A stretch of DNA of 36,087 nucleotides from Octopus bimaculoides (lineage: Eukaryota). Location: positions 53,022,574 to 53,058,660 of the forward strand of contig NC_068991.1 in the NCBI RefSeq assembly GCF_001194135.2, written 5' to 3'. The notes under the pieces are model-generated. The model made no database searches. It was not told the origin of the DNA and saw only the letters and a program-made list of their open reading frames with translations. Positions 3,733 through 34,990 of this stretch are shown here, piece after piece. The position numbers were made by a program, and so were the translations under genes. Each line of letters starts with the position of its first letter. Position 1 is the stretch's first letter.

Positions 3733-3756
3733 TTAAACTTCAAGTCAACAGAACCA

Positions 3757-3945
3757 TCATCATCATCATTTAACATCTGTTTTCCATGCTGGTATGGGTT
3801 AGACGGTTTGACTGGAACTGGTAAGCTGGAGAGCAGTACCAGGCTCCGGTTTGATTTGGCTTGTTTTCTTCAGCTGGATGCTCCTCCTAATGCCAACCAC
3901 TCCAAAAAGTGTAGTGAATGCCTTTTACATGTCACTGGCACAGTG
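3757..3945 (-). mobile_element. RTE-type 3' tail fragment
   Basis: (CAT)n-TTTAACATCTGTTTTCCATGCTGG...CAGCTGGATGCTCCTCCTAATGCCAACCAC. Confidence 0.8.
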
Positions 3946-6617: not shown

Positions 6618-6701
6618 AATAATACATAGTCTGTTGACTAATTTTTTTCTCCTTAGACCACCGGTAGTAAATTGAATTTCTAAAATTTTTTTTGCTACCC
6701 T

Positions 6702-7325
6702 NNNNNNNNNNNNNNNNNNNNNNNNNNNNNNNNNNNNNNNNNNNNNNNNNNNNNNNNNNNNNNNNNNNNNNNNNNNNNNNNNNNNNNNNNNNNNNNNNNN
6801 NNNNNNNNNNNNNNNNNNNNNNNNNNNNNNNNNNNNNNNNNNNNNNNNNNNNNNNNNNNNNNNNNNNNNNNNNNNNNNNNNNNNNNNNNNNNNNNNNNNN
6901 NNNNNNNNNNNNNNNNNNNNNNNNNNNNNNNNNNNNNNNNNNNNNNNNNNNNNNNNNNNNNNNNNNNNNNNNNNNNNNNNNNNNNNNNNNNNNNNNNNNN
7001 NNNNNNNNNNNNNNNNNNNNNNNNNNNNNNNNNNNNNNNNNNNNNNNNNNNNNNNNNNNNNNNNNNNNNNNNNNNNNNNNNNNNNNNNNNNNNNNNNNNN
7101 NNNNNNNNNNNNNNNNNNNNNNNNNNNNNNNNNNNNNNNNNNNNNNNNNNNNNNNNNNNNNNNNNNNNNNNNNNNNNNNNNNNNNNNNNNNNNNNNNNNN
7201 NNNNNNNNNNNNNNNNNNNNNNNNNNNNNNNNNNNNNNNNNNNNNNNNNNNNNNNNNNNNNNNNNNNNNNNNNNNNNNNNNNNNNNNNNNNNNNNNNNNN
7301 NNNNNNNNNNNNNNNNNNNNNNNNN
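6702..7325. other. Assembly gap
   Basis: Run of N. Confidence 1.
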
Positions 7326-7489
7326 GATTTCAATAGTTTGAGATAGAAATTTCAGAGTTCTCTCCCTTACTCTATGTCGGTTGCGATCTCAATTCTTTTT
7401 TTTTTTCACAAGCAATTTTCTATTTAAGAAATGTTAGGTTTTACAACGCAACTGTTTGCAGCACCAGAAAATCATCATCATTATTATTA

Positions 7490-9112: not shown

Positions 9113-9244
<132 letters not shown>

Positions 9245-12391: not shown

Positions 12392-12829
12392 AGATACACA
12401 CATGTATCTGGAATGTTGTACTTTTATTAGGACCACTCATGGAGGCCAAGGTCAAAGAAGAGAAGTGAGACTAAATGTGACCTGTCTCCACTTCAAGATT
12501 CCCATGGCCTAGCAAGTGGACGTTGATGAAAACAATGGCTGAACTGGCAGAGGATGGCAATGACAGAGTCTGGCTGATACCACTTTAGACTGCGACCAAT
12601 TCAGAGGAAATCTGTCGCAATTTCATCATTTGATATTGCCTGTTTCAGTTTACATCTTCTGCAGACGATGGTTCTAAAACTATTGTGCATATGTGGGTCA
12701 CATCCTAGCAAGTTGAGACCCACTCTAAATAAATCCACAGCATTTGGTATTTCTATCTGCTGATATTTCCTTCAGCTAAGAAAAATTGAAATTCTAACAT
12801 AAGAAACAGCCACTGTCACCAATATATCG

Positions 12830-13690
12830 TCATCATTATTATCATCCTTTAACATCCATTTTCCATGTTGGAATGAGTTGGACAGTTTGGCCAGAGCTGA
12901 GAGCTGCACCAGGTCATAGTCTGATTTGGCTTGGTTTCTACAGCTGGATGCCCTTCCTAATGCCAACCACACCAAGAATGCTTTTGCTTGCCACTGACAC
13001 AAGCACTTTTATGTAGCACCAGCACTTTTATGTAGCACCAGCACCAGATTTTTGCAGGTCAATCCTCGTCACCAACGGATGTGGCTTTAACACTTCTGCT
13101 GTGGAGGACAAGTCTCCTTGAGTACAGCAAGACACCAGATATCTTGGTCCTTTGTCATCTTAGCCAAAAGTTTCAGTGTCTTAAAGGTCATCCTTCAGCA
13201 TTTCATTCCATGTCTTCCTGGGTCTCCCTCTTCCATGAGTTCCATTTACTTTGAGTGAACGACACTTCTTTATGGCGCTATCAGCATCCATCTGCATCAC
13301 TTGACCAACCCAACGTAGTCTCCTCTCTCTGGCACAGTGCATCTAATTCCTCTTATGCTTAACCTCTCTCTCAATATACTAACACTCTGTTGCACATGTA
13401 CACTTACATTACACACTCAGCGGAGCATACTAACCGCATTTCCCTCTAGTCTTTGTATGTCCTCTGCATTCAGGGCCCACATCTCACTATCATGTAGAAT
13501 TACAGTTTGTATGCATGCATCATAAAATCTTCTTTTCACTTGGAGAGAGAAAACTTTGGTTATCAACAGAGGTAAAAGCTCTCTGAATTTTCTCCACCCT
13601 ACTCTAGCTATTACACTCTCTGTACATCCTCCTCCACTACTAATTTGTTCCCCTAGGTAGCAGAAATTATCCACTACCTCTAAAGAGCCT
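12830..13690 (-). mobile_element. RTE-clade LINE relic: RT C-terminus, 3' UTR and tail
   Basis: Minus strand SLEVVDNFCYLGEQISSGGGCTES...GWRKFRELLPLL...LHDSEMWAL, then GRPRKTW-like sequence, ending in a (GAT)n-type tail. Confidence 0.9.
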
Positions 13691-13694
13691 CTGG

Positions 13695-13862
13695 GGTATT
13701 TGAGTACTCTGTGTGAAGTGGTTGACATTAGAAAGGTCACCCAGTTGCAAAAGAAACCATGCCAAAGCAGACTTTGAAGCATGATGCATTCCTTGAAACT
13801 AATGGATCCTATTAAACTATCCAACCTATGCCAACATGGAAGGCAAACATTGAAAGATGATT
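13695..13862 (+). mobile_element. RTE-type 3' tail fragment, head-to-head with the previous element
   Basis: GTGGTTGACATTAGAAAGGTCACCCAG...CCAACCTATGCCAACATGGAAGGC...GATGATTGAT. Confidence 0.7.
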
Positions 13863-14304
13863 GATAGTTAATGGTACATACACATACACACTCACAGATG
13901 CACACATATATACATATATGTATACACATACAGTCACATACAGTTGATCTCTTTGTTTTCTTGTCTTAACTAAAGTACTGAAAACATACTTTCCTCAGAC
14001 AGTGACATCATAATATATCATTAACTTTGGTACATTTTAAATGCAATCTCACAGTGGCTGCTTTGTATCCTAATTAATGTATTACAGAAGCATTTGATTA
14101 TTAGCCCCAGGCCAGCAGTCTTTGAACAGCTCTATGATAAAAGGCAATCCATCCATAACCATCCAATCTATTATTCAAACTGTCTATCTAAGACTATATT
14201 TTCTAATGTGTCCTTCATGTTTACAAAGTTAGTAAGGTTTAATTTGAGGGGTATTTTAGTTGCTATTTCTAGCAGGTCAAACATCCATGTAGAGACGCAC
14301 TCAC

Positions 14305-17268: not shown

Positions 17269-17274
17269 GTATAT

Positions 17275-17402
17275 NNNNNNNNNNNNNNNNNNNNNNNNNN
17301 NNNNNNNNNNNNNNNNNNNNNNNNNNNNNNNNNNNNNNNNNNNNNNNNNNNNNNNNNNNNNNNNNNNNNNNNNNNNNNNNNNNNNNNNNNNNNNNNNNNN
17401 NN
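17275..17402. other. Assembly gap
   Basis: Run of N. Confidence 1.
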
Positions 17403-18444: not shown

Positions 18445-18568
18445 GCATATGGTTTCAGGTTCATTCCCACTGTGCAGCACATTGGGCAAATGTTTTCTAC
18501 TATTGTCTCAGGTCAACCAATGCCTTGTAAGTGAGTGTGGTAGACAGAAACTGTGTGGAAGCTCATCA
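18445..18568 (+). mobile_element. SINE family A fragment running into (TACA)n
   Basis: GGTTTCAGGTTCATTCCCACTG...GGTAGACAGAAACTG. Confidence 0.7.
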
Positions 18569-18580
18569 TACATACATACA

Positions 18581-18613
<33 letters not shown>

Positions 18614-18802
18614 GCATACATACATGCACACATGCACACATACATACATACACACACACACACACATACATACATACATACATACATGCATACATGCACA
18701 CATACATGCATACACACATACACACACATACATACATACATAAATACATACACACATACACACATACACACATACACACATACATACATACATACATACA
18801 TA
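18569..18802. repeat. (TACA)/(CA) compound microsatellite
   Basis: Direct reading. Confidence 0.95.
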
Positions 18803-19306
18803 TAGGGTGTGTAAGATATCTGAGGACAGATTTATGTTTATAAAAAATCATATATATAAGAGATAAAAACTTTATTTATCAAAAAAATGCTATGAGGATA
18901 AAAATAAACCTTCTTTACTATAATGTTATTCAATAAAGCCACCTTCAGCTTCAACAGCTGCTTCTATATGAGATCTAAATCCTCCACATGCTCGAATCAA
19001 GTGGTTCTGGTTCATTATGGACATGACTCTGACTATGACAGCTTTCAAAGAATCTTTGGTGTTATGGGCGTGTTCATTACCTCTCTCTCAACAACGTTCC
19101 ACATGTAATAGTCCAATGGATTGAGATCTGGGGAATTAAGAGGCCAAATGTTAGGGATTATGTGATCATGAAAATTTTCAGCCATCCATTCCTGGGTTAC
19201 TAGAACCATGTGTGATAGTGCAGAGTCTTACTGAAACACATATGGCCTTCCATTGCATACACTGTCTATCCAGGGCTTAACAAATATTTCCAGGACCTCA
19301 ATGTAG
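18803..19306 (-). mobile_element. Tc1/mariner DD37D (maT-type) transposase relic with 3' TIR
   Basis: Minus strand YIEVLEIFVKPWID...YVFQ*DSALSH...IWPLNSPDLNPLDYYMWNVVE...IEAAVEAEGGFIE* (stop 18926-18928). 37 residues lie between the second and third Asp. The end reads TA-TAGGGTGTGTAAG, like a CAGGGTG TIR. Confidence 0.9.
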
Positions 19307-19431
19307 GACTATGTTGAGAAGAAGGGATGTGATCCACAGAGAACCAGCTTCATTTTGATGTATGATACATGTTCCTGTGTTGGTAATTATACCTGTCCTA
19401 AATAAAATGGCATTACTTTTTGACTCACCCT

Positions 19432-19588
19432 CATCATCATCATCATCATCATCGTTTAGCGTCCACTTTCCATGCTAGTATGGGTTGGACGATTTGACTG
19501 AGAACTGGCAAGCCAGAAGGCTGCACCAGGCTTCAATCTGATCTGGCAGAGTTTCTACAGCTGGATGCCCTTCCTAACGCCAACCACT
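19432..19588 (-). mobile_element. RTE-type 3' tail, well conserved
   Basis: (CAT)n-CGTTTAGCGTCCACTTTCCATGCTAG...CCTAACGCCAACCACT; matches 28260-28420. Confidence 0.85.
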
Positions 19589-19619
19589 AAAAATATATAC
19601 TGCATTTATTCATGTTTTA

Positions 19620-19735
19620 GTCACATTTGCTTATAAGTCACACCCTTAATTTAGCATTTAATCTTGATACACAATTTTTTACCCTTCATAATTTTGGCTT
19701 TGCCCCTTATAAGTTACACCCCAGTTTTTTCAGCT
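19620..19735. mobile_element. Possible pogo/Tigger-like terminal fragment
   Basis: Two copies of TATAAGT(C/T)ACACCC; no partner end found. Confidence 0.25.
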
Positions 19736-19839
19736 GAAATCAAGTATAATATCGTCTCCAGCTGGCTATATGATACGATCTGTGTCCTTATATTTTTGAA
19801 CAAGGGAATCTAGCAACCCCCACTCAGTTCAAAGCAATA

Positions 19840-19884
19840 TCTGTGTATTGCGATTTCTGACTTATTTCCTTTCATCAGCACAGA
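19840..19884 (-). ncRNA. Type I hammerhead motif, unit 1
   Basis: TCTGTG-CTGATGA-AAGGAAATAAGTCA-GAAA-TCGCAA-TA-CACAGA; 6-bp stem I, intact core boxes, weak stem II. Confidence 0.7.
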
Positions 19885-20204
19885 ATAATTGTTCTGGCTA
19901 GAGTTGGTACTGCCAAATTCCCATTCAAAATATATAGTTTTCAAAGTGACAACTAGACACTGATCTATAAATTAGAAAATTACTACTTTTAAATCTCACA
20001 ATGTGAGATATTCAACAACAATACTTTGAAGTAAAGATTGTTTGCCAACATAACATGGCAGTCCTGGTTTAGGACGAATGTTGCTGTAATTTAGCTCCAG
20101 GAGACATCGTCTGCTGTTGGCTTTATGACACGATCTGTGTCCTTATATTTTCAAACAAGGGAATCTAGCACCACCACCCCCCCTCACCTCAGTTCAAAAC
20201 AATA

Positions 20205-20249
20205 TCTGTGTATCGTGATTTCTGGCTTATTTCCCTTCATCAGCACAGA
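20205..20249 (-). ncRNA. Type I hammerhead motif, unit 2
   Basis: TCTGTG-CTGATGA-AGGGAAATAAGCCA-GAAA-TCACGA-TA-CACAGA; stem II GG/CC only. Confidence 0.72.
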
Positions 20250-20653
20250 ATAATTGTTTGGCTAGAGATGGCGCTGCCAAATTCCCATTCGAAATATATA
20301 GTTTTCAAAGTGACAACTAGTCCCTGATCTATAAATTAGAAAATTACTATTTTTAAATCTCACGAGAGATATTCAGCAACAGTACTTTGGAGTAAAGATT
20401 GTTTGCCAACATAGCATGGTCAATTAAATTTAAGTACAAACTTTTCCAGTTTGAATTACTTCCTAATACAAATCTGTTTTTGAAACTTTGTGCTATTTTT
20501 CATGAACTGATCTGGTAGTCCTGATGTAAACCTGTTTATGACAAATAAAATATGAATAAAAAAATAGGTGCTAACGACAACTGAAATCTTCCTTCATTGG
20601 TAATAATAGCATTGCAATACACAAGTGCTTAACTCATCTCTCCCATTTTTTAG

Positions 20654-20722
20654 TTCAAGACTTAAATCTACCATGTGGTTTGAGGTTCCATTTTTGAACA
20701 ATCTTTCAAACATAACAAGCTG
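20654..20722 (+). CDS. Candidate short exon (69 nt, phase 2-2)
   Basis: Acceptor ctctcccattttttag, donor CTG/gtaaca, open frame xSRLKSTMWFEVPFLNNLSNITSx. Confidence 0.28.
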
Positions 20723-20769
20723 GTAACAGCCTGCAGTTGCCTGTCAACTAAATTTAGTATGCATTTTTC

Positions 20770-22042
20770 TACTCAACTGGTGTGTGTTGTACCTAAGTAT
20801 CATTTGGTTTTTCATGGCTCCTATATAGGATTTTATACGGCTATTTGTGTGTATGTCACATTGGTAAACTACATTTTTAGTCTTACATCTATTAGAGAAT
20901 TGGCACTTCTATCCCTGCAGCCACATAAATTATTAGGTATATTTGTGTTCGTGTTGTGTTGTGGGGGGCTATTACTACTCTGGTCTTTGTCTATGTTACT
21001 AGGAGGCGCTTCATTAGTGGTGGGATTTGTTCTATTAGTCTGTTGATTGTTACATTTATTGTTCCTAATTTTCCTAGCTTTGTAGAATGTGTCTAGTTTT
21101 TATTATTGATCGAGGCTATGATGGTAGCTAAGTTATTAGTCAGGCTGTGGCCTACTCTAATTTTATTCCTAAATATTGCTGCATATTTATCATTTACGTT
21201 TAAGCGTTTATCTATTAGTTTCATTAATGAGCGAACTATGTTGGATTTGACGTGCATAGCGAAAAGGATTACAAGCCAGATCTTATCCCTATTACGTCTA
21301 TTGTTAGTATTGCTATGTCTGGTATAGAAACTACCCTCATTGTTTGTAAGGCATGTGAAATTATAGTTATGGTTATCAAGTTTATTTCTTATAGTTGGGT
21401 TTATCTTTTCTATTGGTCTTGTCTGTTTTATTGGGATTATTTCTGTATGGTTTATGTGGACTCAATGACCTGGTGTTATGGTTTTTAACAGGGTTTATCT
21501 TTGTTCTTTGGGGCTCTTTATTTTTATTCTTATCAATATGTAGGTTTATATTATTCTTATTACAGCTATTATTATTTTTCAATTTGTTTTTATAATTCGT
21601 GCTATTAATCTTGTTAATGTTGTTAATTTTATTGATTATCCCATCGTTGGTATTCATGTTGTCATTGTTTATAATATTATTGGTGATTTGTGTAGGGGAC
21701 TTAACATTGTTTCTATTGCTATTATTTTTGTTGTTCTTATTGCTGGTGTAGTTTGTAGTGACGTTTGGTGTTTGGTTAGTGTTAATGGTATTATTGTGTG
21801 GATTTTTGTTATTTAGGTTATTTGTATAGTGATTGGCGTCTAGGTATTTAATTTTTTGTTTAAATCTTGCTTTATCTAGTGCAATATTATAGATTTCCTT
21901 ATCCTTATTAAAAATATGTTAGTTGGAAGAGAGGCATGATATTCTATTGCTAATGTTATGTACTAAACCTCTCTTAATAAAGTTCGGATGGTTACTGGAT
22001 GCCTTTATGTATTTGAGGTTAGTGTTGGGTTTCATATAGGGT
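20770..22042 (-). mobile_element. Penelope-like element relic: RT thumb, Asn-rich linker, GIY-YIG endonuclease start
   Basis: PYMKPNTNLKYIKASSNHPNFIK...IYNIAL (thumb); RRNRDKIWLVILFAMHVKSNIVRSLMKLIDK...IFRNKIRVGHSLTNNLATII; LCGCRDR; RCKTKNVVYQC...KSYIGAMK...LRYNTH. Few stops and frameshifts. Confidence 0.88.
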
Positions 22043-22297
22043 TCGTGGGTTCCTGTGGTCTTTGGTCAGTCTGAGGCTATAGTTGTAAACACTTGCTCAA
22101 GGTGCCATAGTAGTAAATAATGTATGCATAGACTTAAAAATGGCTTTCTTGACAAAACCAAGTCTAAATTCATATTTAATGGGTACCACTTCTGTAACAC
22201 TCAAGAACTAGTAAGTCAGTCACTTGTCATGACATATTGCAAAAATAAATAAATATATATTTTTTTAAAGATCTAAATAAATAATAATTATAATAAT

Positions 22298-22488
22298 TTC
22301 AAATTTTGGTACAAGGCTAGTAGATTTGTGAGAGGACTAAGTTGATTGTATTGATCCAATGTTCAAACCTGAAAGGATGAAAGCAGAGTCGACCTTGGCA
22401 GAATTTGAATTCAGAGTGTAAAGATGGACAAAGTGGCACGAAGCATTTTGCACAGTACGCTAACAATTCTGCTAGTTCACCGCCTTTA
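22298..22488 (-). mobile_element. SINE family B
   Basis: Similar to the reverse complement of 7490-7716. Confidence 0.8.
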
Positions 22489-22526
22489 ATAATGATGATG
22501 AGGATGAAGATGATGATGATGATGAA

Positions 22527-23020
22527 TGCCCTGATGCAGTACCAGGCAGCATCTCTTGTGGCTTTTGATCTTAACTGATTGGAAGTGTTATCATGTACAT
22601 TGTTTTGTCTTGGTATAAAAGATGGGCTACAACAAATATTCTGCTTAATACCACAGATTTGCTTGTCAGTTGTTTGACCTTAACCAGTTGGTGTTTGAAT
22701 AATTCACCTCTGGAAACATGGGCGTTTTGTTCATCCTCCTCAAAACAATCCTTATTCAGGGACCTTTTGAGCAGGGTAGTCTACTGAACCTGAAGAAAAT
22801 TATAACTGCCCCCCCCCCTGCAAGATTATGCACTGTTTCTCTTGATATGAAATCACCATATTGCACACATATGGTTGTGATGCATGTGCCTGGTGTACCC
22901 TTATCAGACGGGTAGTCATGATGGGTATATTGGGCTTCGTATATTTGTACCCAAGTGTCACTTTGATGACATGCGCTACTCTCTCACATAATAATAATAA
23001 TAATCATAATAATAATAATA
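22527..23020 (+). mobile_element. Unclassified SINE-like repeat ending in (AAT)n
   Basis: Non-coding, simple-repeat tail, recognised as an octopus-type interspersed repeat. Single copy in the window. Confidence 0.45.
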
Positions 23021-23021
23021 A

Positions 23022-23225
23022 TTTCTAATTTAGGCACAAAGATAGCAATTTTGAAGGAAGGGGTTTAGTTGATACCACTGCTTCCAGGACTCAAATTGTA
23101 CTTATTTTATCAATCTTGAAAGGGTGAAAAATGTAGGCAACCTTGGCAGAATTTGAACTCAGAATGTGAAAAGTCAAAATAAGTACTGCAAAGTACTTTT
23201 GCCCAACACTCTGATGATTCTCCAT
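23022..23225 (-). mobile_element. SINE family B
   Basis: CTTGGCAGAATTTGAACTCAGAATG motif. Confidence 0.8.
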
Positions 23226-23234
23226 CTAAATAAT

Positions 23235-23626
23235 AATGTTGTTGTTGTTGGCACTCCATCGCTTACGACATCGAGGATTCCAGTTGATCCGATCAACGGA
23301 ACAGCCTGCTTGTGAAATTAACGTGCAAGTGGCTGAGCACTCCACAGACACGTGTACCCTTAACGTAGTTCTTGGAGGATATTCAGCGTAACACAGTGTG
23401 ACAAGGCTGACCCTTAGAATTACAGGTACAACAGAAACAGGAAGTAAGAATGAGAGAAAGTTGTGATGGAAGAGTACAGCAAGGTTCGCCACCATCCCCT
23501 GCCGGAGCCTCGTGGAGCTTTAGGTGTTTTCGCTCAATATACACTCACAACGCCCGGTCTGGGAATCGAAACCGTGATCCTATGACCGCGAGTCCGCTGC
23601 CCTAACCACTGGGCCATTGCGCCTCC
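23235..23626 (-). mobile_element. tRNA-derived SINE related to family C, full length and young
   Basis: Minus strand GGAGGCGCAATGGCCCAGTGGTTAGGGCAGCGG...GGTTTCGATTCCCAG head; 3' body shared with 4355; (CAA)n tail; CpGs retained. Confidence 0.88.
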
Positions 23627-24377
23627 ACTTAAATAATAATAACAATAATAATAATAATAGATCCAGAACAAAAAAAAAACACAAAAACAAATTCAGCTGC
23701 AGAGGAAGACTGCCTAAAGTAAACTGAACGTTGATGCGAATGTGATTGAATATATGTCATGTATACATGTGTGTATATGTGTGCGTGTGTATGTATACAT
23801 GTATGTATGTGTATGTGTATATATGTAAATGTAAGTATTATGCATACACACACATACACATAGATCAAAGTTTCACTGTTCACACAGCTTCTCTTGTCAC
23901 CTCTCTATGTATTTCTTCATTTCTCTCTGACACATGATTCTTCTCTAATGGTTTCTGTCTGCATTTATAACTCCATGATATAATGTTAAATAAAATTTGT
24001 TATTTATTTATCAACTTTGTTTTGTTTTTTTTAGACATTTATGCATTCTTGAACTTTATTTTATAATTTCACATAGAACAAAAAGAAAAAATTAAAGGAC
24101 TTTAGTATCAAATAATGAAGCAGTCCAGTAAGGGTTATTAGTTCAATTGCAATTATTTATATCCATGGTGATTGACTTAATTTGTATGCTATTAATAACA
24201 TGATATTCATCTTAACAACTGGAAACAACAATCATTTGATGACATTTATGATAACCAATACATAGTATTGCATAATAAATGACTAAAGAAGACCACCACT
24301 TAAAGGTATTGATTGGTTGAGGGGATTGACAAAAGAATTTCTTTACTGTATTGTTTATTGTATATGTTAATTCAGAC

Positions 24378-27325: not shown

Positions 27326-27985
27326 TCATTGACACAGGATAGGTCTACAGTTCAATATATGGATCATAGTCTTGATGCCCAGAGTACAATTTCCCAAGAT
27401 GTTATATAATTTTGAGAATGCAGATTTGGCCAGCACTATTCTTCTTTTGATCTCCTTTACACATCTTGTGTTGAAGGATGATACCCGGCTTTATGCTTTG
27501 ATTGTTCACTTTCAACATGCACTTTAGGAGGCTATCCTTTTTTTGTCACCACTATACACAATTCTTGCAAGTTATGGAAGTGAAACATGATTTATAACAT
27601 CAAAAATGAGGTGTTTGGAGAGCTGTGAAAGGAGGTTCTTAAGAATATTAAGGATAGCATGGACAGAAAAAGTGTTCAATGAAGAAGTGATAACACTGGT
27701 TGTGGTAAATAGGAAAATGTTTTGTGAGATAAGGACCAAGCAACTGAGATTTCTTGGTTATGTGATGAGGAAAGAAGGCCTGGAGAATTTAGAAATGACC
27801 AGAAAGATTGAAGGGAAAAGAAGCAGAGAAAGGAGAAGGATGATATGGATGTCAAGCATGATGAACTGGTTGGAAGAAAGAGGCATCAAACATCAACAGC
27901 AGGAAGTTGAACTGTTAAAGAAAACAAAGAACAGAGAATTGTGACAGGATATTATCTCCTATGTCCTACATTCTGGACATGGTAC
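27326..27985 (+). mobile_element. RTE-like LINE 3' fragment with 5' inversion
   Basis: Plus strand 27555-27944: YGSET*FITSKMRCLESCERRFLRILRIAWTEKVFNEEV...QLRFLGYVMRKEGLENL...KIEGKRSR. Minus strand 27520-27326: RCVKEIKRRIVLAKSAFSKLYNIL. Confidence 0.82.
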
Positions 27986-28059: not shown

Positions 28060-28420
28060 AAAATACACCATTTTGAGCGTGGCCGTTACCAGTACCGCCT
28101 GACTGGCCTTTGTAGGATTTTCAAGCAAGATCGTTGCCAGTGCCCCTGGACTGGCTCTTGTGTGGGTGGCACATAAAATACACCATTTTGAGCATGGCCG
28201 TTGCCAGTACCGCCTGACTGGCCTTCGTGCGGGTGACACGTAAAAGCACCCACTACACTCTTTGAGTGGTTAGCGTTAGGAAGGGCATCCAGCTGTAGAA
28301 ACTCTGCCAAATCAGATTGGAGCCTGGTGTTGCCATCTGGTTTCACCAGTCCTCAGTCAAATCATCCAACCCATGCTAGCATGGAAAGCGGACGTTAAAC
28401 GATGATGATGATGATGATGA
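28060..28420 (+). mobile_element. RTE-type 3' UTR and tail with 116-bp tandem unit
   Basis: AATACACCATTTTGAGC at 28061 and 28177; ends GGACGTTAAAC(GAT)n. Confidence 0.85.
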
Positions 28421-28618
28421 TCACCTATACCCGATTTATCAATATCTCCTCAAGTCACAGCTTTGTGATGTTCCTCTACTCTTGTTTTGAGGGGGCGACA
28501 TGTTTCGCCTTTGCATAACCTACCACAGCTGCATGGGATGGAGTACACGCAGATTTTGGTCATATTCTCTTCTATTGGTGGTTTTACTCCAAAGAGATAT
28601 TTGCGAAGTGCTGTATTG

Positions 28619-30556: not shown

Positions 30557-31283
30557 CAGAAGAATTCATACTTTGTTCTAATCATTGTCCTGCATTTATT
30601 TAACCCACATTTGGCTTGGTATACCTGGCTGTAAATAGGTACTACTCTAAGCTGCAGTACTGTTGTTTAGACGAATGATATTGTTAGGTTGCAATGTGAA
30701 ATTAAATTCTTCCTTCGAGAAAACTCCATGACATAGCTACAGGATGTGCTGCATCGATCAGACGTAAAGTTTTTCCCACTCTACCCCATATACTGGCTTA
30801 TGCAGCAGACCCAAAAGAACACCTCACGCCATAAAACATCGCCTGGGGCAGAGTATCCCATCCCTGCCCCCCTAGCTAATACCACTGGGAAAGTTCCCTT
30901 CATAAGACTACGAATTTATAGAGGAATGTAGTTAGGGTACTGGACACTATCCCAAACCAGAGAGCATCACCAGGCCATGTAGATTATTGGAATCTGGAAT
31001 CTTTTAACTTATTTTACTCAAGATTAGCTTTAGTGTTGCGATTTTAAGAGAAAATATAGTGACACAACAACCGAAGAAGGTTGTCATTTCAACCTACTTC
31101 GGTCTAATACAGTTACAGAACAGTGAACCGCCCCCCTCTCTCTCTCTCTCTTCATCAGTTAGACTATTTATATATCAATCAATACTCAGAATATCACGGT
31201 ACGGCAGTAGTGTCAATTTGACAATTAACATGCAAAAAAAAAAAAAATCTAGGTAACACACACAAGAGCGTCCGAATGAATGC

Positions 31284-33569: not shown

Positions 33570-34990
33570 ATAGTGCACCTGAGCACTGTATACAATAAAT
33601 TCACTATTATTATTAGTGGATTAATGGTTTGGCACCCAGGTTTGTCTGTTAGTCTACCTGTAATTCTGCTATATCTCTTATGGAGTTTATACCTACACCT
33701 TTTTTGCATATCAAGTAAGGTCATTTCCCTGAATATGCCAAAGTCCTGTCTTCTTTCCTATAAATTAAAACTTTTGTGTTTACTTATTTTACCTTGTGGT
33801 TTCCTAATTTTAGGTTTAGCTCCTCTGCCTGGAACTTCCTCTCTAATTCTCCTATAGAATCATCTACAAGAACTTGATCATCAGTGATAGGAGTTTCCAT
33901 GGACAGCCAGTCTCATACTCCTCTTGCAGTACTATGACGAATAGAAGGGGACTGAGGACAGAGCCTTGGTGGATTCCAACCCTTATGTTCTTCACTGAAG
34001 TCATTTTTGATTCTTGTTTTACTTATTGTATCTTTGTACATGTCTTGTACAACTCTCTCAAGCCATTTATCAACACCTAATTTCCTGAGTACCCACCAGA
34101 TTATTGTACATACCCTTCCATATGCCCATATGCCTTCTTTGGGTCAATGAAGATCAGGAGTAATGGTTTACTTTTAGCCAAGTATTTTTTCTGCAGCTGT
34201 CTCTCTAGGAAGATTGCATTCATAGTACCTCTTTGAGGCACTAAACCAAACTTGGCTTCATCCTGGTCTATCTAGTCACAAATCAATTGGTCTATGTGAC
34301 CTTCACAACTTGATCCAGTAATTTTATTTCTGTATAACTGCTTCTCTCTAAGGCATCACCTTTGCTTTTGCAGCAGTTTATGATCATACTGCTACACCAC
34401 TCATTGGGTATGATATCTTGAATAACTTGATTAATTATCTAAGCAGTAATCCTGAACCCTACCTCATTGGATATTTTGAGCAGCTCCACAATTATGCCTG
34501 GTGGACTGGCAGCCTACCCTCCTTTCATGTCCTTGATCACTTTAACATCTATACTACTGTCAATTTGAATTGCTAGCCCTTCTGTAGGTTCAGCGTTAGT
34601 TAGCTCCTCTTTATCCCATGCATTCTCCACATTCAACAGCCACTTATAATAGCACTTCCATGCCACCTTCTTGTCTTCCATACTAATGACAAGTATGCCC
34701 TCATTCCAAATACATTTCTCACCAATTACACCTTGGTTCTCTCTTACACTCAGACTCACAATCCTAATCTCTTCATGTCTCTGATCCTCACGTTGCAAGA
34801 CATGTGAAATCTCTTCCTTTCTGCCTCATCCTTAGCCAAATATATCTGTTTCCACACTCACTTCTAGCCATTTGGTAATTTTCCCTACTATCACCTTCCT
34901 TCCAGGTTTTCCATGCCTGTCTCTTAGTCTTTACTACTTTGTCAACTGTATCATTCCACCACCATGTGACTTTCAACTCGGTCAGGACTT
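33570..34990 (-). mobile_element. RTE-clade LINE relic (EN-RT linker and RT core)
   Basis: KVTWWWNDTVDKVVKTKRQAWK; AWKCYYKWLLNVENAWD; GIHQGSVLSPLLFVIVLQ...GCPWKLL, then a disrupted YADD. Many stops and deletions. Confidence 0.88.

Follow-up and report, generated by a model that had tools for sequence, protein, structure and literature searches.

A decayed two-unit tandem array in Octopus bimaculoides as a probable relic of a hammerhead retrozyme

The minus strand of positions 19751-20419 carries a 669-base array of 1.86 head-to-tail direct units, each of approximately 361-365 nt and each containing one hammerhead-like motif. Positions are those of the window, that is, the whole stretch of 36,087 nucleotides from Octopus bimaculoides that was analysed. 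Judging from its sequence, the array most likely arose when two units of a metazoan non-LTR retrozyme were inserted and then decayed. This copy is probably catalytically dead at present, and the locus should be called the decayed relic of a retrozyme and not a working one. The divergence of about 10% between the units, the broken palindromes of helix III, the random-level helix II, and the truncated 3' unit mean that the copy probably no longer cleaves itself. The preliminary description of this DNA had proposed a cephalopod retrozyme. The unit size, the non-coding character, the GC content, the tandem arrangement, the type I layout, and the exclusion of chance speak for this assignment, whereas helix II, the Rfam search, the present-day fold, and the lack of constraint speak against it.

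The array is composed of direct repeats and is non-coding, with a GC content of 37%, that is, below 50%. Unit 2, which is the 5' unit in the RNA sense, occupies 20059-20419 on the minus strand and is complete (361 nt in the MAFFT alignment). Unit 1, the 3' unit in the RNA sense, occupies 19751-20058 on the same strand and is truncated to 308 nt in that alignment. It is without the last 47 nt of the unit; the homology stops after ...GACGAT. This 47-nt segment is present in a single copy at 20059-20105 on the minus strand, between the repeated blocks. A repeat search gave four co-linear direct-repeat blocks of 54-105 nt, with identities of 87-93% and a spacing of 355-365 nt. The identity between 19751-20058 and 20106-20419 was 87.7% counting gaps (BLASTN), and that between the two units was 90.5% over 305 aligned positions (MAFFT). 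A count of the differences between the units gave 20 transitions, 9 transversions, and 3 indels; six of the changes are CpG-associated. The longest ORF in the array region is 49 amino acids, and the approximately 1.9 tandem units without an ORF that had been claimed are borne out. The array is the only tandem repeat of 150-450 bp in the 36-kb window and accounts for 1.9% of its length. It should be mentioned that Tandem Repeats Finder did not call the array, even at a score of 30. This means that retrozyme pipelines based on this program (10.64898/2026.07.22.740005) would miss such an array.

Each unit carries, on the minus strand, the string TCTGTG-CTGATGA-14 nt-GAAA-TCRCRA-TA-CACAGA. It was found exactly as previously described, at 20205-20249 in unit 2 and 19840-19884 in unit 1. 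These 45-nt cores lie within hammerhead-like motifs of 63 nt at 20197-20259 (unit 2) and 19832-19894 (unit 1), both on the minus strand. The unit 2 motif consists, in order, of the distal helix I, a 3x1 internal loop, the 6-bp helix I, CUGAUGA, a 14-nt helix II region, GAAA, UCACGA, and UA; in the unit 1 motif, helix III reads UCGCAA. Self-cleavage has been shown experimentally for four genomic retrozymes, namely Amil224 from coral, Mg353 from mussel, and Ax353 and Ax330 from axolotl (PMC7229834). Their ribozymes have the core CUGANGA / GAAAY / RUH, a helix I of six pairs, and a helix II region of 13-14 nt (PMC7229834). This core is intact in both units of the array as CUGAUGA / GAAAU / AUA, and all six pairs of helix I are Watson-Crick pairs in both. 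In the minimum free energy (MFE) fold of unit 2, helix I extends via the internal loop (UAU/U) into a 7-bp distal helix, AAACAAU/AUUGUUU. Six of the seven pairs are retained in unit 1, with one mismatch. The distal helix and the internal loop are an addition to the preliminary description. Helix III has the same geometry in both units: an A-U pair and a U-A pair, followed by a tetraloop. Cleavage is predicted after AUA, at 20211|20210 and 19846|19845. These sites are exactly 365 nt apart, in agreement with the spacing claimed earlier. The predicted head-to-tail junction at the cleavage site would read ...GAAAUCRCRAUA joined to CACAGAUAUUG....

Under one operational definition, a retrozyme needs a complete hammerhead of type I in two or more successive units (10.64898/2026.07.22.740005). 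Both units of the array carry the motif in phase, and its helix II fails a perfect-helix descriptor. Canonical metazoan type I hammerheads have a helix I of 6 bp, a helix II of 4 bp, and a helix III of 1-2 bp with a palindromic loop of 2-4 nt (PMC4209133). The pairs of each helix were counted by explicit parsing of each motif. In unit 2, helix II reads A·A, G-C, G-C, and G·G plus AAAUAA, and contains only 2 bp. In unit 1, it reads A·A, A·C, G·U, and G·G; both G-C pairs have been lost and a single G·U pair is left. The weakness conceded in the preliminary description, a stem II of only GG/CC that is decayed in unit 1, is the same as that seen here. The helix II region is 14 nt long in both units, and 33% of random 14-mers of the same composition form two consecutive nested pairs, which equals helix II of unit 2. 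A helix II of about 4 bp with the G10.1-C11.1 pair, as in canonical type I hammerheads, is formed by neither unit. The A·A and G·G mismatches are common to both units. This means that the defect of helix II is older than the divergence of the units.

The next point is helix III. In the four validated ribozymes, its insert is 4-8 nt long (6 nt in the mussel and Ax353 ribozymes), and A15.1, the insert, and U16.1 together form a perfect palindrome in 4/4 (PMC7229834). The corresponding palindrome is broken in both units of the array, with two of the eight positions mismatched in each. The variants UCACGA (unit 2) and UCGCAA (unit 1) differ at CpG-associated positions, and one CpG-type reversal per unit restores the palindrome AUCGCGAU. 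Descent of both variants from this palindrome, as had been suggested, is consistent with the CpG context and with the fold of the restored pair. For the latter, the predicted MFE dimer is a double hammerhead of -33.7 kcal/mol, comprising helix I, the GG/CC helix II, and an 8-bp helix III. The trans helix III amounts to -12.1 kcal/mol in the CpG-restored sequence, as compared with -1.9 to -3.4 kcal/mol in the present copies. The cofold of the present copies was not a double hammerhead. In the individual 63-nt motifs, the hammerhead fold was predicted at -7.0 kcal/mol (unit 2) and 0.0 kcal/mol (unit 1), as compared with MFE values of -13.1 and -10.2 kcal/mol, respectively; the hammerhead is not the MFE structure in either. 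Neither the monomeric nor the dimeric hammerhead fold is favoured for the present copies. The dimeric folding that tandem copies of metazoan retrozymes had been said to allow is reached in silico by the CpG-restored sequence, but not by the present-day copies.

The predicted monomer between the AUA|C cleavage sites (19846-20210, minus strand, 365 nt) shows long-range self-pairing. Its fold is largely rod-like and closed by helix I, with an MFE of -103.9 kcal/mol; the value for the permuted unit 2 was -109.8 kcal/mol. Compared with dinucleotide shuffles, the monomer fold had a z score of -4.4; with mononucleotide shuffles, the score was -4.8 to -5.4. Paired bases made up 62-64% of the fold. Eight of 150 random 365-nt segments of the window fold as stably as the monomer. 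The ribozyme strand is favoured by 19.4 kcal/mol. This is nothing unusual, as 56 of 200 random segments showed a strand difference of this size. The predicted self-pairing fits the highly self-paired RNAs of retrozymes, and is not decisive.

The present state of the locus can be read from the substitutions. The 45-nt motif shows four substitutions between the units (8.9%), as compared with 9.5% for the whole unit, and all four are in helices II and III. The 25 positions of the core and helix I show no substitutions, where 2.4 would be expected; this shortfall is not significant. The substitution rate of the motif is close to the background; in other words, purifying selection has left no visible trace since the split of the units. 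No significant target-site duplication was found, the best alignment of the flanks being equalled in 1028 of 2000 shuffles; in metazoan retrozymes, a duplication of more than 4 bp is an optional feature. BLASTN gave no further copy of the unit elsewhere in the 36-kb window. The motif and the conserved block had no exact-pattern match in metagenome, prokaryotic-genome, or viral collections, and the six-frame translation of the array had no match in a collection of 5.8 billion proteins. The window itself is repeat-rich and AT-rich, and contains N gaps. The neighbours of the array are a SINE-like element, which occurs four more times in the window, and a weak relic resembling Tc1/mariner.

These observations also bear on the possibility that the array is a working retrozyme dimer. 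In this case, the helix II variant, with A·A at 10.1/11.1 and two G-C pairs, would be native, the RNA would cleave only as a dimer or with help in vivo, and the 365-nt RNA would be circularised. Every core nucleotide and a perfect helix I have been kept in both units, which would be in line with such activity, with the reservation on significance given above. The helix II defect is common to both units, so that the inserted template already carried it. Activity as dimers has been reported for hammerheads whose helix II is 2 bp long. Furthermore, in one validated axolotl ribozyme the same position of helix II is taken by a U·U mismatch, and this ribozyme is active mainly as a dimer. Against this, the present copies form only the weak trans helix III described above and do not cofold as a double hammerhead, and helix II of unit 1 is without both G-C pairs. 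The 3' unit is truncated, the units have diverged by 10%, the motif has changed at the background rate, and there is no match to Rfam. Activity of the present dimer is therefore considered to be unlikely.

A related proposal concerns the family and not this copy. The host might harbour a live retrozyme family in which the A·A mismatch and two G-C pairs are the native helix II, an 8-bp palindromic helix III is formed, only the double hammerhead is used, and circular RNAs of approximately 365 nt are abundant. We would give such a family a low probability. It is more speculative still that, under this proposal and in hosts with heavy A-to-I editing, the rod-like RNA might be a substrate of ADAR. 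Editing of the A opposite C in helix II of unit 1 might then recreate the pair found in unit 2.

As a next alternative, the array might be a low-copy satellite or a plain local tandem duplication in which a hammerhead-like string arose by chance. A hammerhead descriptor applied to both strands of the whole window gave exactly two matches, both on the minus strand and one in each unit. With a relaxed descriptor (CUGANGA, 6-40 nt, GAAA, 2-14 nt, UH, a Watson-Crick helix I of at least 6 bp, and any helix II), the expectation was 0.0047 per window from 3000 dinucleotide-preserving shuffles, and 0.0035 per window from an analytic estimate. When the canonical spacing of the validated ribozymes and a Y15.2-R16.2 pair were imposed, the expectation fell to 1.3e-5 per window, which corresponds to roughly one in 2.7 Gb. 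That a scan of a whole genome would turn up about one such motif by chance in this amount of sequence is a point in favour of this alternative. The motif of one unit is a copy of that of the other; this means that the second motif is not independent evidence. A chance motif would, however, have to fall inside the sole mid-size tandem repeat of the window, and the joint expectation is then about 2e-7 per window. A chance origin is effectively excluded on these numbers, even for a genome-wide scan, and is not a serious explanation of the motif.

Comparison with covariance models gave less. None of the hammerhead families of Rfam 15 matched at the gathering score in the whole window, nor at E<=10 in segments of 1.4 kb and 91 nt, these searches being run with no positive control. 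The only Rfam matches at E<=10 were chance-level hits to snoRNA, miRNA, and tmRNA families, driven by UGAUGA and (GAT)n. A C/D-box snoRNA can be ruled out: no D box or terminal stem is rightly placed, and the motif is only 45 nt long. A custom covariance model was built solely from the four validated retrozyme ribozymes, and the window was searched with the filters off. The unit 2 motif ranked first in the window (13.7 bits, E 0.083) and the unit 1 motif third (11.5 bits, E 0.35). The match at 31102-31164 (12.7 bits) is spurious; it is a (GA)n run with GUAA in place of GAAA. A model of four sequences is over-fitted to their own helix sequences, and its scores give weak support only. The random-level helix II, the negative Rfam search, and the marginal E values with a spurious site scoring similarly speak for a chance string. 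The near-palindromic helix III of the same length as in mussel and axolotl, the 14-nt helix II region, the distal helix I, and the self-paired monomer are not readily accounted for by it. A plain duplication with a fortuitous motif seems improbable.

It might also be considered that the array is the remnant of a pseudo-LTR tandem of a Penelope-like or other hammerhead-bearing autonomous element, and not of a dedicated retrozyme. In Penelope-like elements, the direct repeats at the flanks contain hammerheads of type I, and the elements are inserted as partial tandems (PMC4209133, PMC8557442); a 2026 preprint derives animal retrozymes from the pseudo-LTRs of such elements (10.64898/2026.07.22.740005). 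In the array, the repeated blocks are just 47 nt apart, and neither the array nor the adjacent sequence contains an ORF of more than 49 amino acids. No similarity to reverse transcriptase or GIY-YIG was seen beside the array when the six-frame translation of 18850-23800 was inspected by eye only. In addition, the layout of the motif, with a helix I of 6 bp and a helix III of 2 bp plus a tetraloop, is canonical and not of the minimal Penelope type. There is little probability that the array is such a remnant. A MITE, to which the imperfect inverted repeat inside the monomer might point, is ruled out, as the inverted segments lie on either side of the hammerhead within a head-to-tail array and bound no single insertion.

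The preferred reading remains the decayed insertion of a retrozyme, and the following course of events might be envisaged from what is known of the family. The element would be a non-autonomous, non-coding retroelement with a unit of approximately 361-365 nt and one type I hammerhead on the minus strand. Oligomeric minus-strand transcripts would fold into the hammerhead, most likely the double hammerhead, in which the self-complementary A-UCGCGA-U of two units would form an extended helix III. Cleavage would take place after AUA and would be followed by circularisation by an RtcB-type ligase, as in the life cycle described for metazoan retrozymes (PMC7229834). The circles would then be copied into tandem cDNA by the reverse transcriptase of an autonomous element, and integrated. 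A Penelope-like element is the leading candidate for this enzyme, and a link between Penelope and retrozymes is supported by the 2026 preprint (10.64898/2026.07.22.740005).

No open-access paper pairing a retrozyme with a cephalopod was found in the literature, save a brief remark in PMC8557442. In its present form, the locus amounts to a single decayed copy of an element type that is already known, and its practical use is that of a seed for a family consensus and for checks for a circular RNA of approximately 365 nt. If the family were confirmed genome-wide, the host lineage would join the patchy list of animals with hammerhead retrozymes. Confirmation in a cephalopod would extend a known type of element to a new host lineage. 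The family would also provide a natural variant of helix II, with which the need of dimeric hammerheads for this helix could be tested.

Several known systems can be compared with the array. Plant LTR retrozymes (PMC4918200) are non-autonomous and non-coding, are processed by hammerheads, and have circular RNA intermediates, all of which is proposed for the family of the array as well. They carry type III hammerheads in LTRs of about 350 bp, together with a body of 600-1000 nt, a PBS, a PPT, and target-site duplications of 4 bp (PMC4918200). The array, in contrast, has type I motifs with an open helix I, no internal body, and no detectable target-site duplication. The minimal hammerheads of Penelope-like pseudo-LTRs (PMC4209133) are closer in that they are of type I and lie in direct repeats of a retroelement; their activity as monomers is low. 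They have a helix II of 7-8 bp, a helix I of 4-5 bp, and almost no helix III, and they flank an ORF for reverse transcriptase and GIY-YIG; none of these features is found in the array. The satellite hammerheads of amphibians and schistosomes are of type I and depend on dimers. Their short helix III with a palindromic tetraloop permits the double hammerhead, as is also the case in silico for the CpG-restored sequence of the array. Their helix II is a stable 4-bp helix and the contacts between loop 1 and loop 2 are conserved, whereas helix II of the array is defective.

The closest systems are the metazoan non-LTR retrozymes, which are tandem non-coding repeats of 150-450 bp with a GC content below 50% and highly self-paired circular RNAs (PMC7229834). 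The units of the mollusc Mytilus are 350-390 bp long (PMC7229834). Retrozymes of this kind form multi-copy families in the host genome, often in longer arrays. The differences from these systems are as follows. There is no detectable sequence similarity to the mussel and axolotl families beyond the core. The 15.2-16.2 pair is U-A and not the C-G pair of the validated retrozymes; hence, the cleavage triplet is AUA. Helix II has 2 bp with mismatches on both sides, each palindrome is off at two of eight positions where all four validated ribozymes are perfect, and there are just 1.86 diverged units. As for the axolotl, helix II of Ax353 begins with a U·U mismatch, position 17 is an A, and the triplet is GUA; this ribozyme cleaves weakly alone and efficiently as a dimer (PMC7229834). 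The array resembles axolotl HHR_Amex2 in two respects, the mismatched base of helix II and the A at position 17. The helix III insert of 6 nt is the same as in the mussel and Ax353 ribozymes, and the helix II region of 14 nt falls within the 13-14 nt of the validated ones. The predicted self-pairing of the monomer fits these systems, within the limits given above. In unit size, non-coding character, GC content below 50%, and tandem arrangement, the array is like the metazoan retrozymes, especially the 350-390-bp family of Mytilus galloprovincialis and the Rtz_353 family of axolotl, and it has, like them, a 6-bp helix I and one motif of type I hammerhead layout per unit.

The SINE-like interspersed repeat nearest the array of retrozyme-like units (19751-20419, minus strand) is about 160 nt long and lies at 19433-19593; read in the minus sense, some 160 nt separate it from the array's 3' end. 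This copy is terminated by a (GAT)n/(ATC)n microsatellite. Further SINE-like copies are located at 28261-28421, 3755-3908, 12826-12970, and 1767-1837, and the identity among the copies in the window is 77-91%. No tRNA was found by ARAGORN in the whole window.

The interval between the array and this SINE-like copy is unique sequence. Two near-identical direct repeats of about 17 nt, GGTGTAACTTATAAGG and GGTGTGACTTATAAGC, are both within it on the minus strand (19705-19722 and 19629-19645, respectively), at a spacing of about 76 nt.

The custom hammerhead model, a covariance model built from four validated retrozyme ribozymes, also gave 12.7 bits at 31102-31164 on the minus strand. Downstream of CUGAUGA, the sequence there has a (GA)n run and GUAAC. 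Because the GAAA box is absent, this site was rejected as a hammerhead and the match is judged to be spurious.

The window comes from a draft eukaryotic assembly. It contains assembly gaps at about 6700-7330 and 17270-17400 (791 N in total), and the density of di- to tetranucleotide repeats is very high, as exemplified by (CA)n at 9114-9242 and (CATA)n at 18567-18802. Arrays like that at 19751-20419 could be collapsed or under-represented in other parts of the assembly.

Three ORFs of 94-170 aa, at 13417-13929 (minus strand), 27606-27944 (plus strand), and 34514-34798 (minus strand), resemble C-terminal tails of LINE-type reverse transcriptases. None of them gave a Pfam match at E≤0.01, and neither a homologue nor a record of the ORF at 13417-13929 was found in the protein collection searched. 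On the minus strand at about 19081-19272, there is a stop-interrupted reading frame containing NSPDLNPLDYYMWNVVERE. Its match to Pfam DDE_3 is weak and under the cut-off (E 0.032; 14.5 bits). The NSPDLNPLDYYMWNVVERE stretch resembles the C-terminal part of a DDE transposase of the Tc1/mariner type.
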